A stretch of 64,000 bases of DNA from Scyliorhinus canicula (Eukaryota), in the NCBI RefSeq assembly GCF_902713615.1, contig NC_052168.1:5890001-5954000 (forward strand). Reading direction: 5' to 3'. Below are positions 1,360-62,713 of this stretch, piece after piece. The notes beneath the pieces are model-generated. The model ran no database searches. It worked only from the letters and a program-made list of their open reading frames with translations, and was not told the origin of the DNA. A program made the position numbers and the translations under genes. How positions within the stretch are numbered: the first letter of the stretch is position 1; each line of letters opens with the position of its first letter.

Positions 1360-4030
1360 ATGGCTTCCCAGGTGCGTCAGAACTACCACAAGGACTGTGA
1401 GGATGCTGTTAACAAGCAGATCAACCTGGAGCTCTATTCCTCCTATGTTTACCTCTCCATGGTGAGTTTTACTTTTTTGGGAGCCTTATTTTCAAATTAA
1501 GACTGTGACTATGTTGCTTTCTGAGCAGGTAGAGTTTCTCTAGGTGAATGAGTTGGCTTTAGATATATTTCAACCCAGACTGCATGGAGTGATACTCCAG
1601 ACAGGAGTTTGGTCCTATTTTAGAATTTCTGTGTCCAGTTTAGATCTGAAATTAACACCAGGGTTCTGGATTCTGAGGTTAGTAGAAAGATTGTTTTGAA
1701 GGCACTGGAATCTCAACTTTTCCAATTGCAGGGGAGCAATTATTAGGGAGTGAAACATTAGCTGCATTTGTGGTCAGTTTACCCTCCCTAATGTGCTGAA
1801 CTCAAATGTTAAAATATTGAATATGAACAATTATCTCTTTAATTGATATTACTCCATTGTAGATTTAGTAGAAGTGATTTTTTTTTTTTAAAAATTTTAA
1901 AATTTTAATCCAAAAGTGTTATTGCTCTTGGGTTCTCCAGTTCTGCCATTTTCTATTCAGCTGAGCTTTTGACTGGGAAGAGTGAGTTTAAACAACTTTA
2001 ACAGGAGTAGACCATGTGGCGATATGCATAAGCAATTTAGTATATAATGTATACCACCTCCAACCACCAGGTGGCAGTGTAAACTGACCATGTGACTATG
2101 TGCTTAAGGGAGTTGTGCTTGGGGGAGTTGGGAGTCTTGTTGGTGGATAGACTTATTCTGCAGTATAGTTAATACTTTGTTCTATACTTATTCCAGTTAT
2201 CTTTACCATGCAGTTGTTTCATTTTGGACTAGATGTTCTGTAGTGCATTATTTACACTGGCCAGTCTACAGAACATGACCGACACAAGGCCCAGCCCGCC
2301 ACTCCACCATTTGAAGGCTGGCATGGGTTTCAACTACATTTTCCTCTCCCCTCCCCATAATCACTTCATTGCCTGAGACCAACTGCCTGTCTATCCCAGC
2401 CTTAAATGTATTCCACAATGGAGCAACAAAGCCCTGGGCAGAGAATTCCACAACCTTCTGAACTAAATTGCCGGGCAAGTAACCTTTTTTTTAAAAAGTC
2501 ATCTGATTCTTTAAGACCAGCTATTGAGGTAAAGAAAGGATGAGTTATGGAGCTGTGGGGTGTTTTTTTTTTCAGTTTGGGTGGTCTCTGGGTCTCTCCT
2601 GACTCTCCCTTTCCATTGTCTCTCCCTGCAGTCCTCTTACTTTAACCGGGATGATGTTGCCCTGCGTCACTTTGCTGAGTTCTTCAAGGAGCAGTCACAT
2701 GAGGAACGGGAACACGCTGAGAAACTGATGGAATTCCAGAATAAACGTGGAGGCTGCATCATCCTGGAAGATGTCAAGGTTGAAGGATAAGTCTAATGTG
2801 CTGAAGGAGAATCGTGTGGACTCTATATTTCTGGGGGGGGGGGGGGGGGGGGGGGGGTTGGCATTTTCTGTTTTTGCATCTGTGATGCCAACATCATGGG
2901 TAGAATTCCTGAACTGGATGAGATTATTGACTAAGGCCAGAGGTATTGTGACCCTTGACCCCCCCCCCCCCCCCCCCCCCCCCCAGTGCCATTTTATGTT
3001 TTGCAAATTGGGATGAAATGAAAATCGCTTATTGTCACGAGTAGGCTTCCATGAAGTTACTGTGAAAAGCCCCTAGTTGCCACATTCTGGCACCTGTCCG
3101 GGGAGGCTGCACAAGAGTCTGCAAAATCCAGTGAGATAAATAAGATGTGGTGGTGGTGAAACCTCTGGATCACCTGAGCTAGTGGATCAAGGTAGTTCAG
3201 GAGGAAAGATTTCCTGCAGTGTGCTGTTAACCCAGGCATTGCAGTGGTTAGCAAGGAGACAGCAGAATGTGGATCATATTTGTCCACTGTCGTACAGAAG
3301 TCATTTTGAAATGAGCGGATGGGGTTTTTATGGAACCCTTTGGCTTAAGATGTATATTGAGCAGTATCGAATAATGGTCCCGCATCACCTGCAATTGTAG
3401 CCACTCACTAGCTTCACACTTTTTTTTGGCCAGAAACCAGAGCAGGATGAGTGGAGCAATGGTCTGGAGGCAATGCAGAGAGCTCTGCAGATGGAGAAGA
3501 ATGTGAACCAGAGTCTGCTGGATCTGCACAAACTCTCCTCTGGGAACACCGACCCTCATGTGAGTTGGATTTTGATATTGGAATCTGCTCTTCGCTATAT
3601 ATTGAGTTCCACTTGGGCTTCACACTTGTATGTTGAACAATGGCAGTTGACACCATGACTTGGGAATTTGCTGTTGATAGTTGCCTTTGCTTTGCTCGGT
3701 GGGGCTGGAGCTGTAACCATTATCGTGATTCTCAGGAGGCAATTTGGATTGTTGTATTCATACTGCGACTCGTCTCATGTCCCACTCATCCACAGCACTT
3801 GTATTTATCTTTCTGCTGTGAAAACAAATGCTGTTGATTCCTAGATGTTTGTCTGAGCTAATGATACATATTTTGTGTTCTAGTTATGCGACTTCCTGGA
3901 GACTCACTACTTGGATGAACAAGTGAAGATGATCAAGAAGCTCGGAGATCACATCACCAACCTGAAGAGACTGGGAGCCCCTGAGAATGGCACGGGAGAG
4001 TACCTGTTTGACAAGCTCACCCTGGACTGA
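1360..4030 (+). CDS. fth1: Ferritin heavy/middle-chain-like, copy 1; join(1360..1461,2632..2778,3434..3559,3884..4030), 173 aa
   Basis: Spliced translation [177 protein letters not shown] phase-0 introns at vertebrate ferritin positions; ferroxidase ligands E27,Y34,E61,E62,H65,E107,Q141 present; AATAAA at 4062 and 4099. H versus M orthology not resolved. Variants D42N, R79C. Confidence 0.95.
2064..2077 (+). promoter_or_regulatory. Candidate CTCF site in intron 1 of copy 1
   Basis: CCACCAGGTGGCAG fits the CTCF core CCASYAGRKGGCRS; identical in copies 2 and 3. Confidence 0.5.
3014..3109 (-). mobile_element. 5'-truncated SINE tail in intron 2 of copy 1
   Basis: Matches the unit tail of the 33 kb SINE array; also at ~11303-11399; absent in copy 3. 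Confidence 0.75.
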
Positions 4031-60493: not shown

Positions 60494-62713
60494 ATGGCTT
60501 CCCAAGTGCGTCAGAACTACCACAAGGACTGTGAGGATGCTGTTAACAAGCAGATCAACCTGGAGCTCTATTCCTCCTATGTTTACCTCTCCATGGTGAG
60601 ATTTGTTTGTCATCCTCCTTTGAATTTGAGCTTGTGATATTATATTCTGAGCAAATTTCTTTTCTTGGGTAATGAATTGGTTTTAGTATCTCAAATTCTC
60701 TCTCTGGACTTCATCCAGTGAATGTTAATTTACAGTAGAACTCATTACACTGACTGTTCCCTCTAATGGAGTTACTCTAGGTATTTGTATCTAAAATTAG
60801 GGTTTGTAAGCTGGTAACTAAAGATTTTAGAAACCTAATCAATATTTCTAAATTGGAAATAAAAACAATTAAGTAACCAATTAGTTAGACATTGGTTCTG
60901 ATAGTTTTATCTAATTGAATGAAGGACTTAAATCCTGACTAAATTGTCCTCCAATTGAGGCTGGAGAACAGGTATGTGTCAAATGGCTGAAGTCAACTAT
61001 TTTGTTGTTAGCTTAAATGCAGTTTGATAGCTGTAATTGTTTCTTTGAAGAAATATTATTGAAGATTTGTCTTCTAATATAGCTAAGTACCCTTGCTAAC
61101 TCTTTCACAGGGTTTCAATATAATTAAATCATTAGGACACAATGGTATGGTAGAAAAACTTGCCCCCATAAAGGAGGATGTGGAGAGAGTGCAGATAAGA
61201 TTTACAAGAAAGGTTCCAGGGATGAGCAATTGGGGACTGCTTTCCTTGGGAGAGATGAAGAAATTGTGCAGCTGGTCAGGAATAAATGGGGAGGAACTGT
61301 TCCCATTTCTAAAGGATCAAGAACGAGGGTGCAAGTGAACTGAAAAACTATCCCTAAAGAGTGGTTTGAGTCCAAGTGGGCAGTGAGAAGTGAGGTGTTT
61401 GAAAGGGCATCAGATGAATATATGTGCAGGGAGGGTGGAATTGCATCATTTAATGTTTGTTTTGATAGAACCAGTGTGACATGATGGGCTGAATGGTCTT
61501 TTTAAACAAGGTATTGAGAGAATGGGATATCCCATAATTCTGGATTTTCTAGCATAGGTAAGATCTGCCTGAACTGACTCTTATCCTTTTTTCATCTCCC
61601 TGCAGTCCTCTTACTTTGACCGGGATGATGTTGCCCTGCGTCACTTTGCTGAGTTCTTCAAGGAGCAGTCGCATGAGGAACGGGAACACGCTGAGAAACT
61701 GATGGAATTCCAGAATAAACGTGGAGGCCGCATCATCCTGGAGGATGTCAAGGTTGGATTGGTCTTTTTACAAACCGACTAGCTTGACCTGACCTAATAA
61801 GGTTTCCCTGCTGTCTAGAGAATAGGGGATTAATGGATGTTGGAGGTGGGGGAAGTTAGTGCTTGGAAGTAGAAGCATCTTGTGAAATCAACATAACTGG
61901 CAAACTCAATATTCTAAGAATGTGGATGCTTGCAATGCTAAACTGGGCTCTGTAAATGTGCTCTGAAGAGATACAAGGTGAAATGGAAATGGACTCGTAC
62001 AAAAATTGGACGAACTGCCATTAGAAACTATCTTGTAAATTGTGGGGAGGGAGAGCTTTTTGATGACATTAGCAAGATTTTTATTTGGAACATTCCACAA
62101 GCTTGAACTGGGGGAAATTAATTACCACTTTAATCCAACTGTTTGCTGGTGGGATTTCCTTCCTCATCTCCAGAAACCAGAGCAGGATGAGTGGAGCAAT
62201 GGTCTGGAGGCAATGCAGAGAGCTCTGCAGATGGAGAAGAATGTGAACCAGAGTCTGCTGGATCTGCACAAACTCTCCTCTGGAAACACCGACCCTCATG
62301 TGAGTGAATTGTTTTCATTTACTCTTTTTTGGCGAACTTGAATGGTGAATGTTCCTGTCTCTCAATCTCTAGACATCTAATTTACACTTATTGGGATGGA
62401 TCATGGGCTTTTTCAGGGGACTGCTAAAGAGAAAGGACATGTGTTTCTGTTGCCCCAGTAATTCTGGAATAGAAGCACTTCAATCACTGACCCCTTCATC
62501 TGAGGAAATCTAGTTCATAATTGATACATCCTACTGGATGCTAATTACTTCTCCTCTTTCTTTCAGCTTTGTGACTTCCTGGAGACTCACTTCTTGGATG
62601 AACAAGTGAAGATGATCAAGAAGCTCGGAGATCACATCACCAACCTGAAGAGACTGGGAGCCCCTGAGAATGGCACGGGAGAGTACCTGTTTGACAAGCT
62701 CACCCTGGACTGA
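60494..62713 (+). CDS. fth1: Ferritin H/M-like, copy 9; join(60494..60595,61606..61752,62174..62299,62567..62713)
   Basis: Intact ORF; variant Y137F. Confidence 0.95.

Follow-up and report, generated by a model that had tools for sequence, protein, structure and literature searches.

Tandem arrays such as those of the rDNA, histone and U2 snRNA genes are homogenised as whole units, spacers included, by unequal crossing-over and gene conversion. Concerted evolution that is limited to coding regions has been described in paralogues retained from the yeast whole-genome duplication, notably in ribosomal protein genes (PMC3924837, and Evangelisti and Conant 2010 as cited there). In these yeast paralogues conversion keeps the coding sequence and its silent sites alike, non-coding homology is hard to detect, and the review attributes this to purifying selection, by which the coding DNA stays alike enough to allow further conversion (PMC3924837). 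The reach of conversion also differs between exons and introns in the primate red/green opsin genes and the colobine RNase duplicates, in which conversion homogenises the introns whereas certain exons are held distinct by selection (PMC3924837).

In the Greenland shark more than 100 FTH1-like ferritin copies are found in clusters that are syntenic between distant sharks, no younger than 250 million years and expressed specifically in the ovary (10.1101/2024.09.09.611499). The term 'gene conversion' is absent from the text of that preprint. The catshark array described here belongs to the same gene family and is the same type of array.

The window, by which we mean the whole stretch of DNA that was analysed, comprises 64,000 nt of the forward strand of Scyliorhinus canicula (GCF_902713615.1, NC_052168.1 5,890,001-5,954,000). 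It contains nine intact four-exon H-type ferritin genes (c1 to c9) and three orphan copies of exon 4, each on the plus strand. In 9/9 genes the exons are 102, 147, 126 and 147 nt long, the introns are bounded by GT and AG and a frame of 173 codons is open (173 amino acids). The introns fall into four groups. Group A consists of c1 (1360-4030 from ATG to stop; exons 1360-1461, 2632-2778, 3434-3559 and 3884-4030; TATA box at 1290, poly(A) signals at 4062 and 4099), its young duplicate c2 (9660-12329; exons 9660-9761, 10933-11079, 11735-11860 and 12183-12329) and an older member, c3 (18597-22071; exons 18597-18698, 20961-21107, 21695-21820 and 21925-22071). Two copies each form an intron group of their own: c4 (28343-31173; exons 28343-28444, 30207-30353, 30634-30759 and 31027-31173) and c5 (35779-37754; exons 35779-35880, 36732-36878, 37236-37361 and 37608-37754). 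Group D consists of c6 (41609-43752; exons 41609-41710, 42728-42874, 43307-43432 and 43606-43752), c7 (48152-50379; exons 48152-48253, 49273-49419, 49848-49973 and 50233-50379), c8 (54321-56552; exons 54321-54422, 55439-55585, 56017-56142 and 56406-56552) and c9 (60494-62713; exons 60494-60595, 61606-61752, 62174-62299 and 62567-62713). An Rfam scan gave no match to an iron-responsive element or other known RNA at the gathering score, and the genes most likely belong to an old tandem array whose H-type ferritin genes lack this element.

A catshark protein that is 95% identical to the query (P0012) matches human ferritin heavy chain structures over residues 2-174 (E = 1e-84), and the matches in public databases carry PF00210. 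Ferroxidase-centre motifs, DEQVK among them, are present in the aligned translations of 9/9 copies; in c5 NLEHY replaces NLELY. Judged from their translations, c1 to c9 are H-type on both counts, having a full-length ferritin match and the residues of the ferroxidase centre (E27, Y34, E61/E62, H65, E107 and Q141 in human H-chain numbering).

The array resembles the rDNA, histone and U2 snRNA arrays in being tandem, in that copies within the species are more alike and in that the youngest copies exchange whole units. Unlike those arrays, its units mostly keep unrelated introns and spacers and share the coding exons alone. The yeast genes are dispersed pairs with one intron or none, whereas the catshark genes form a many-copy tandem array with three introns per gene, in which every exon, at about 100-150 nt, forms an island by itself. 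The polarity is opposite to that of the opsin and RNase genes, since in the catshark it is the exons that are homogenised and the introns that differ. The process is already known; the catshark array most likely shows it in an unusually clean form, with a measurable gradient from exon edge to centre and with pseudo-exons as an internal control, two features that set it apart from the yeast case.

The coding exons are 96-100% identical among the nine copies. Exon 3, which an earlier note on this DNA had described as nearly identical throughout, synonymous sites included, has six variable sites in 126 nt, five of them synonymous, and any pair of copies differs at four sites at most. Over the whole coding sequence (CDS) 35 of 519 sites are variable, 18 of them synonymous, and dS is 0.038-0.090 over all 36 copy pairs. 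At a dS of about 0.06 the low synonymous divergence stands; the strict invariance that had been claimed does not.

Between intron groups, introns 2 and 3, most of intron 1 and the 3' flank give no significant blastn alignment. In local alignment, introns 2 and 3 of different groups score like shuffled controls (z about 0-1.6), the few exceptions being the first 39-56 nt of intron 3, which are common to c4 and c1-3 (z 9-14), and two marginal intron 2 scores for c4 (c1-c4 z 4.9, c4-c5 z 3.7). The intron divergence described earlier holds between groups and not within c1/c2 or within c6-9, where introns are 95-98% identical and exons and introns show no contrast. The start of intron 1 (+7 to +110; 1468-1571 in c1) is visibly homologous in 9/9 copies and provides an alignable intron divergence. 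Its p-distance is 0.01-0.05 within c1/c2 and c6-9, 0.14 between c1/c2 and c3, and 0.36-0.53 between groups; the corresponding between-group dS is 0.061, not the comparable value that the earlier note had named as grounds for abandoning its reading. Between-group identity is lost within 3-10 nt of every exon edge, and collapses at the ATG and about 5 nt past the stop as had been reported, so the UTRs are not homogenised.

Synonymous divergence hardly changes with the age of the duplicates: dS is 0.043 within and 0.061 between intron groups, a ratio of 1.4 (CI 1.0-2.1), whereas promoter divergence is 0.048 within and 0.311 (JC) between groups, a 6.5-fold rise. Such a contrast might arise with no conversion at all, if old duplicates in a slowly evolving genome had synonymous sites constrained by codon usage or mRNA structure while their introns decayed freely. 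The dS between shark orders of just 0.12-0.17, a GC3 of 0.65 against an intron GC of 0.41, the slow evolution known for sharks (PMC8455134) and the non-significant conversion fragment test discussed below are all in keeping with this. It demands, however, a constant ratio of synonymous to intron rate, and the ratio found is at least about 0.5 in young pairs, at most 0.25 in older ones and about 0.1 between groups. The fraction of variable synonymous sites is 0.075 in c6-9, where that of the introns is 0.071, and 0.037 in c1/c2, where that of the introns is 0.025 (intron p-distance 0.025, dS 0.039); these young duplicates reject any synonymous rate at or below one quarter of the intron rate (P = 0.0007 and 0.005). 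Synonymous sites evolve at the intron rate there, and synonymous or codon constraint alone therefore cannot yield the contrast between groups. The comparison of c1/c2 with the older c3 gives eight synonymous variable sites against an intron fraction of 0.34 (P = 5e-11); between c1 and c3 introns 1 and 2 are 74-82% identical and dS is 0.059. Saturation of fast sites is no rescue, since only two of eight and two of four synonymous differences in the young pairs are CpG sites (contexts read by eye), and codon usage is moderately biased (effective number of codons about 46). The young-duplicate calibration disfavours an account by constraint, which we consider distinctly unlikely.

The orphan exons also weigh against it. 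Downstream of c1, o1 (6142-6286) has a 2-bp deletion that shifts the frame and four substitutions relative to the working exon 4; o2 (14415-14559), downstream of c2, has the same 2-bp deletion and three substitutions; o3 (24450-24596), downstream of c3, is in frame with six substitutions, five of them at codon positions 1 or 2. The orphans are 96-98% like the working exon and their changes lie mainly at codon positions 1 and 2, so the reported closeness of even the frameshifted copies is borne out. The flanks of o1 do not align with any working copy, and o1 and o3 differ by 6.2% in the exon and by about 22% in the flank next to it (P = 2e-7). Pseudo-exons, too, are kept similar although no protein constrains them, which supports conversion.

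In comparison with whale shark and bamboo shark the catshark CDS are monophyletic (support 100/99) with a star-like interior, and nine fixed differences separate them from every sampled copy of whale shark L001 and of bamboo shark, a count made without the two L003 genes. Exons thus cluster by species, as concerted evolution had been expected to produce; the accompanying conflict of topology with the intron groups is not significant, the CDS not significantly rejecting monophyly of c6-9 (AU p = 0.12) and weakly recovering c1-3. The conflict between CDS and non-coding DNA lies in depth and not clearly in topology. Divergence between groups amounts to 0.40 of that between species for dS and to 0.74 of it for the promoter. 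Catshark copies have a dS of 0.057 among themselves and of 0.12-0.17 to bamboo shark and whale shark; the values between these distant sharks are low, but not equally low, the outcome that the earlier note had named as refuting its reading, for they exceed the value within catshark two- to threefold. The promoter has nearly the same depth within and between species, and this combination is at odds with constraint in the absence of conversion.

Intron 1 distances between catshark groups (0.36-0.53) lie close to those to the bamboo shark copy Cp_C (0.43-0.57), and the intron groups may predate the split from the orectolobiform sharks, although the catshark promoters are monophyletic (94/95). Comparison of the catshark array with four whale shark and bamboo shark loci recovered promoters and transposon pieces only and no orthologous introns across orders. 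In the whale shark/bamboo shark pair Rt_F/Cp_A introns 1 and 3 are 68-80% identical, and the exon comparison in this pair is too weak to decide. The between-species dS is about a third of the between-species promoter distance, which unbiased conversion does not explain. GC-biased conversion was considered as a cause and rejected, as we estimate that the bias needed to produce the observed GC3 excess would be too weak for a several-fold slowing of substitution. The literature on neutral divergence between shark orders gave no usable numbers.

The earlier note had also proposed a search for converted fragments. A Sawyer/GENECONV-type test on the 35 polymorphic sites gave no significant signal (P = 0.20 and 0.66), the power being low with so few sites and frequent conversion, and the false-negative rate of tests of this type is high (PMC3924837). 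The four-gamete test is failed by 17/45 informative site pairs, mostly at three CpG sites.

Differences between groups are concentrated at the ends of the exons. Their frequency per site falls ninefold with distance from the exon edge, from 0.057 (0-10 nt) through 0.026 and 0.016 to 0.006 (50-80 nt), and the variable positions are closer to the edges than chance would place them (P = 0.002 overall, 0.011 for synonymous positions alone). The same gradient is expected of an assembly in which polishing with multi-mapping reads had overwritten copy-specific exon variants with the majority base, chiefly in exon centres, and the exons are indeed short repeats more than 96% alike. We regard an artefact of this kind as highly improbable: private variants persist in the middle of exons (such as those at CDS sites 297, 321 and 342 of exon 3), RNA contigs from the same species and from another organism differ by 0-4 per exon, the independent assemblies of whale shark and bamboo shark also have highly similar exons and largely unalignable introns, and public protein clusters at 90% identity have more than 100 members in several sharks.

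Several tracts of high identity cross exon boundaries. The tract common to c1 and c3 (3434-4240 in c1, about 21695-22280 in c3) takes in exon 3, intron 3, exon 4, the 3'UTR and flanking DNA. It ends about 210 nt past the stop and about 140 nt past the last poly(A) signal, beyond both signals, and in sliding windows is 91-100% identical, whereas introns 1 and 2 and the distal flank reach 60-85%. In c4 the first 39-56 nt of intron 3 (30760-30815) are almost identical to intron 3 of c1-3 and the remaining intron is unrelated; with exon 3 included the identity to c1-3 is 97.6% and 95.2%. We read this stretch as a probable conversion tract that spilled over from exon 3. In c5 exon 4 and 295 nt of 3' flank (37603-38049) are 94-96% identical to group D, although its introns are not of the group D type. 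The non-coding DNA of c6-9 has mosaic genealogies; such mosaic tracts are clear only where non-coding DNA can be aligned.

These tracts bear on the template. Reverse transcripts of abundant oocyte ferritin mRNA might have served for repair, homogenising only transcribed and spliced sequence. The homogenisation is indeed limited to sequence found in mRNA, individual exons are short for a DNA-DNA homology search, and ovarian expression is reported for the related cluster of the Greenland shark. Furthermore, in a close relative (runs X30 and X31) precise exon 2-exon 3 and exon 3-exon 4 junctions occur in separate DNA contigs at about single-copy depth, so processed ferritin copies, and hence germline ferritin cDNA, exist. 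The 5' and 3' UTRs, however, are part of the mRNA and are not homogenised, and at least three high-identity tracts contain intron sequence or extend past poly(A) signals. Precise intron loss, which the earlier note had suggested as a cDNA signature, is seen in 0/9 copies, all three introns being kept in each. For variants crossing exon junctions there are few informative sites, and group variants at exon edges, for example CDS sites 376 and 378, follow the adjoining intron type and not the neighbouring exon. Non-coding DNA is also exchanged among young copies, so a DNA pathway is active in the array. Since some tracts include intron 3 and pass the poly(A) signal, a cDNA template is unnecessary, and the observations favour DNA tracts over cDNA.

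Conversion from a cDNA template is thus an unlikely account of the array, though it is possible for events inside one exon. It is equally doubtful that part of the exon homogenisation used spliced ferritin transcripts, or reverse transcripts of these, as templates in the oocyte, alongside DNA-templated exchange; if true, this would be a natural vertebrate case of RNA- or cDNA-templated repair maintaining a gene family, with the processed copies of the relative as by-products. The gradient from edge to centre is expected with DNA and cDNA templates alike.

The array is probably explained by concerted evolution of its coding exons through DNA-templated, homology-limited gene conversion between misaligned copies, with non-coding DNA excluded. 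Recurrent conversion acting on the exons, as the earlier note had proposed, is upheld by the flat dS with age, the young-duplicate calibration and the conserved pseudo-exons, and no other reading than conversion on islands of homology the size of an exon agrees with all the numbers. What the analysis shows is how divergence is distributed, that it falls from exon edge to centre, that some tracts contain introns and that exons cluster by species; from the divergence patterns and tracts we infer the conversion events themselves. The repair mechanism, and the part that selection plays in maintaining similar islands, may be envisaged as follows. Purifying selection on the protein would hold each coding exon of 102-147 nt above the identity needed for homologous repair, so that a break in or near an exon could be repaired from another copy, with synonymous sites carried along. 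Introns, UTRs and spacers would long since have fallen below that identity, and the heteroduplex would stop at the edge of the coding sequence. Each exon would then be a separate island with a well-mixed centre and poorly mixed edges, and in young copies whose whole units are still alike exchange would span introns and spacers too. A point against this reading is that, at 102-147 nt, the islands come close to the shortest homology usually considered sufficient for efficient recombination in vertebrates.

With four islands of 102-147 nt in each gene, set within unrelated introns and with mixing that rises measurably from edge to centre, the array is a clean natural experiment that bears on how little homology suffices for interlocus gene conversion in the vertebrate germline. 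Exon and protein trees of shark ferritins would understate the ages of duplicates and mimic recent species-specific expansions, affecting the dating and counting of clusters. Broken exons in such arrays can stay young-looking, which matters for the dating and annotation of pseudogenes.

The window contains five ORFs of more than 150 amino acids, none with a Pfam match, in a search for reverse-transcriptase ORFs. Reads of the close relative mapped to c4 leave holes in the unique introns, from which nothing follows; they indicate that intron 1 of c4 and the spacer contain high-copy transposon sequence, and the exon contigs from these reads are fragmented.

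The plus strand of the window carries nine tandem ferritin genes, c1 to c9 from 5' to 3', at a spacing of 6-10 kb; the array as a whole extends over several hundred kb or more. Each has coding exons of 102, 147, 126 and 147 nt, introns with GT..AG boundaries and an open frame of 173 codons. They encode an H-type ferritin: a public catshark protein 95% identical to it matches structures of the human ferritin heavy chain (E = 1e-84), and the ferroxidase-centre motifs are found in all nine translations. At 90% identity, public clusters of this protein exceed 100 members in many sharks. 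A TATA box lies 62-75 nt 5' of the ATG in every copy (for c1, window 1290-1360), from which we estimate a 5'UTR of about 30-45 nt. An Rfam scan found no iron-responsive element or other Rfam family in the whole window. The otherwise near-identical proteins differ at codon 76 (window 2857-2859, 11158-11160 and equivalents), where c1 has Cys, c2 has His and all of c3-9 have Arg.

The exons of these genes are near-identical inside divergent introns, as described in the earlier note, which proposed gene conversion as the cause. Only 35 of the 519 nt of coding sequence vary among the nine copies, and 18 of these sites are synonymous. Exon 3 has six variable sites, five of them synonymous, and no pair of copies differs at more than four. 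Nei-Gojobori estimates for all 36 pairs give a dS of 0.038-0.090, with dN never above 0.02. The synonymous invariance claimed in the note is thus overstated: dS is low, but synonymous sites do vary.

The non-coding DNA sorts the same copies into four groups: c1 and c2 with the more distant c3, c4 alone, c5 alone, and c6-9. Between groups, blastn found no significant match in introns 2 and 3, most of intron 1 or the 3' flank. Local alignment scores for introns 2 and 3 are at the level of shuffled sequence (z about 0-1.6), the exceptions being a short stretch opening intron 3 in c4 and c1-3 and two marginal scores for c4 intron 2 (z 4.9 and 3.7). In anchored displays, between-group identity reaches background within 3-10 nt beyond each exon edge and also falls at the ATG and about 5 nt past the stop, so the decay first seen by eye is real. 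Homology is still visible over roughly 110 nt at the start of intron 1 in all nine copies, with 36-53% of sites differing between groups, and the promoter (about 260 nt 5' of the ATG) is alignable throughout, at a between-group Jukes-Cantor distance of 0.311. The introns are therefore old and diverged, not replaced. Set against these values, between-group dS is 0.061, five to ten times below the divergence of the adjoining non-coding DNA.

Constraint on synonymous sites is another possible source of exon likeness. We calibrated the synonymous rate inside the same gene by means of the young duplicates c6-9 and c1/c2. Among c6-9, variation is found at 8 of about 107 synonymous sites (0.075) and at 105 of 1478 intron sites (0.071), and in c1/c2 the variable fractions are 0.037 and 0.025, respectively. 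A model in which synonymous sites change at a quarter of the intron rate can be rejected (P = 0.0007 for c6-9 and 0.005 for c1/c2), and one with half the intron rate can be rejected marginally (P = 0.037 and 0.047). When c1/c2 are set against the older c3, eight synonymous sites vary and the intron fraction is 0.34 in the global alignment or 0.17-0.27 in local alignments, and here equal synonymous and intron rates are rejected (P = 5e-11). Without exchange between copies, no constant ratio of synonymous to intron rate fits the younger and the older comparisons together. The calibration rules out synonymous constraint as the sole cause; codon bias is moderate (effective number of codons about 46). 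From within-group to between-group comparisons dS rises 1.4-fold (CI 1.0-2.1) and promoter divergence 6.5-fold. Such flattening of dS with group distance is the expectation of an equilibrium between mutation and conversion.

Three lone copies of exon 4 are present about 2.2-2.5 kb downstream of c1, c2 and c3 (o1, 6142-6286; o2, 14415-14559; o3, 24450-24596; all on the plus strand). A 2-bp deletion common to o1 and o2 leads to an early stop; o3 is in frame. Each orphan differs from the exon 4 of the working genes by just 3-6 substitutions, and the frameshifted copies have thus stayed close, as first noticed. Codon positions 1 and 2 hold eight of their ten substitutions, and the orphans thus bear no sign of protein-level constraint. 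Copies o1 and o3 differ by 6.2% within the exon and by about 22% in the immediately adjoining flank (P = 2e-7), and the orphan flanks do not align with c1-c9. Codon selection cannot produce this likeness, conversion from working exons can.

Differences between groups become rarer towards the interior of the coding islands: 0.057 per site at 0-10 nt from the island edge, 0.026 at 10-25 nt, 0.016 at 25-50 nt and 0.006 at 50-80 nt. Variable sites lie nearer the edges than permutation expects, both for all sites (P = 0.002) and for synonymous sites relative to third positions (P = 0.011). Exon 1 is the shortest island and the least homogenised, and exon 3 is without any group structure (p 0.012 between groups and 0.017 within). 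Group-diagnostic variants at island edges track the type of the adjoining intron; for example, exon 4 opens with TTA TG(C/T) in c1-3 and CTT TGT in c4-9. This fits a heteroduplex that is unable to enter non-homologous introns.

The note had left open whether conversion proceeds by DNA tracts or from cDNA. An edge gradient is expected under both models, so it does not discriminate between them for single-exon events. Between c1 and c3, identity is 60-85% in introns 1 and 2 and the distal flank but 91-100% over a tract that starts at the first base of exon 3, covers intron 3 and exon 4, and reaches about 210 nt past the stop, some 140 nt beyond the second AATAAA. Intron 3 of c4 matches c1-3 over its initial 39-56 nt and is unrelated thereafter. 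Despite the different introns of c5, its exon 4 and 295 nt of flank are 94-96% identical to those of c6-9, and the non-coding DNA of c6-9 has mosaic genealogies. Anchored displays revealed no UTR homogenisation in c1-c9, and precise intron loss, the suggested signature of cDNA, occurs in none of the nine copies. Since the tracts include sequence absent from mRNA, the UTRs are not homogenised and all introns are kept, a DNA-templated pathway is demonstrably active in the array and is enough for the exon pattern. Nothing here requires cDNA, which may still contribute to events confined to one exon. DNA contigs of a close relative (runs X30 and X31, on window 27800-32900) contain precise joints of exon 2 to exon 3 and exon 3 to exon 4 (30351>30632, 30759>31027) at an estimated depth of about single copy, so processed ferritin copies exist in that lineage.

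For comparison we took loci L001 and L003 of whale shark and L002 and L004 of bamboo shark. Their exons are 86-99% identical to those of the catshark, and outside the exons, alignments between orders are limited to promoters (70-82% identity) and fragments of transposons. Distant sharks are not equally alike at synonymous sites: dS is 0.057 within catshark, 0.12 between catshark and bamboo shark and 0.17 between catshark and whale shark (0.08 between whale shark and bamboo shark), although the between-order values, which set the catshark coding sequences against L001 and L002, are still low. The nine catshark coding sequences form one clade (100/99) with a star-like interior, and nine sites are fixed between all catshark copies and all compared copies of L001 and bamboo shark, a count made without the two L003 genes. 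The clustering by species expected of concerted evolution is therefore present. For the promoter, between-group divergence is 0.74 times the between-species value (CI 0.62-0.86); for dS the corresponding figure is 0.40 (0.26-0.62), which indicates that exons are pulled together within the species.

In whale shark and bamboo shark, too, the introns of neighbouring copies at these loci mostly cannot be aligned. A whale shark copy, Rt_F (L003 14785-16897), and a bamboo shark copy, Cp_A (L002 4402-6709), are 68-80% identical in introns 1 and 3, and none of the other whale shark copies sampled has introns matching those of Rt_F. Exons 1 and 3 of Cp_A differ at 6 of 228 sites from other bamboo shark copies and at 15 of 228 from Rt_F. 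Two neighbouring bamboo shark copies (L002 4300-4401 and 12174-12275) carry the same nonsense change, CAG to TAG at codon 7; their promoters are about 75% identical and their first introns unalignable. This looks like a disabling mutation spread by conversion, but the assembly is a short-read draft. A second, more distant ferritin subfamily with the same exon layout (L004 2559-11455) served only as outgroup; at the nucleotide level its exons share 78-84% identity with those of the catshark, and a fragment of its product, P0077, shares 76% with the catshark protein.

Other results are less favourable to conversion. A GENECONV-type fragment test, proposed in the earlier note, was not significant, and incompatible site pairs mostly involve three CpG sites. 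Nor are the intron groups rejected significantly by the exon tree. The catshark promoters form one clade (94/95), so an origin of the groups before the split from orectolobiform sharks cannot be shown. There is also a small chance that assembly polishing homogenised the exons. Between-order dS amounts to roughly a third of the promoter distance in the same comparisons; the non-coding sequences compared may belong to old paralogues, or the array may lose new AT-ward mutations throughout. GC3 of the nine coding sequences is 0.65 against an intron GC of 0.41, and most minor alleles are strong-to-weak changes (G/C to A/T; 21 against 9 weak-to-strong), which is compatible with GC-biased conversion without being proof of it.

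Yeast duplicates are described as evolving in concert in their coding sequence alone, after loss of non-coding homology, and the same explanation is given (PMC3924837). Ovary-expressed ferritin clusters of sharks are reported in a Greenland shark genome preprint (10.1101/2024.09.09.611499), the text of which does not contain the term gene conversion, and the literature searched held no account of conversion in shark ferritin arrays. The catshark array is notable for its multi-intron island structure, edge gradient and built-in pseudo-exon control.

Very high-copy repeats are present in c4 intron 1 (28655-30193) and in the spacer 3' of c4 (32588-32900). Their word depth is 1e5-1e6 in DNA runs, RNA runs contain them too, and they are presumably transposons. 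The c4-c5 spacer also contains a tandem array (33006-33835, family D8) of units of about 175-180 nt in which alternate units are 98% identical, and related single units are found in other spacers.
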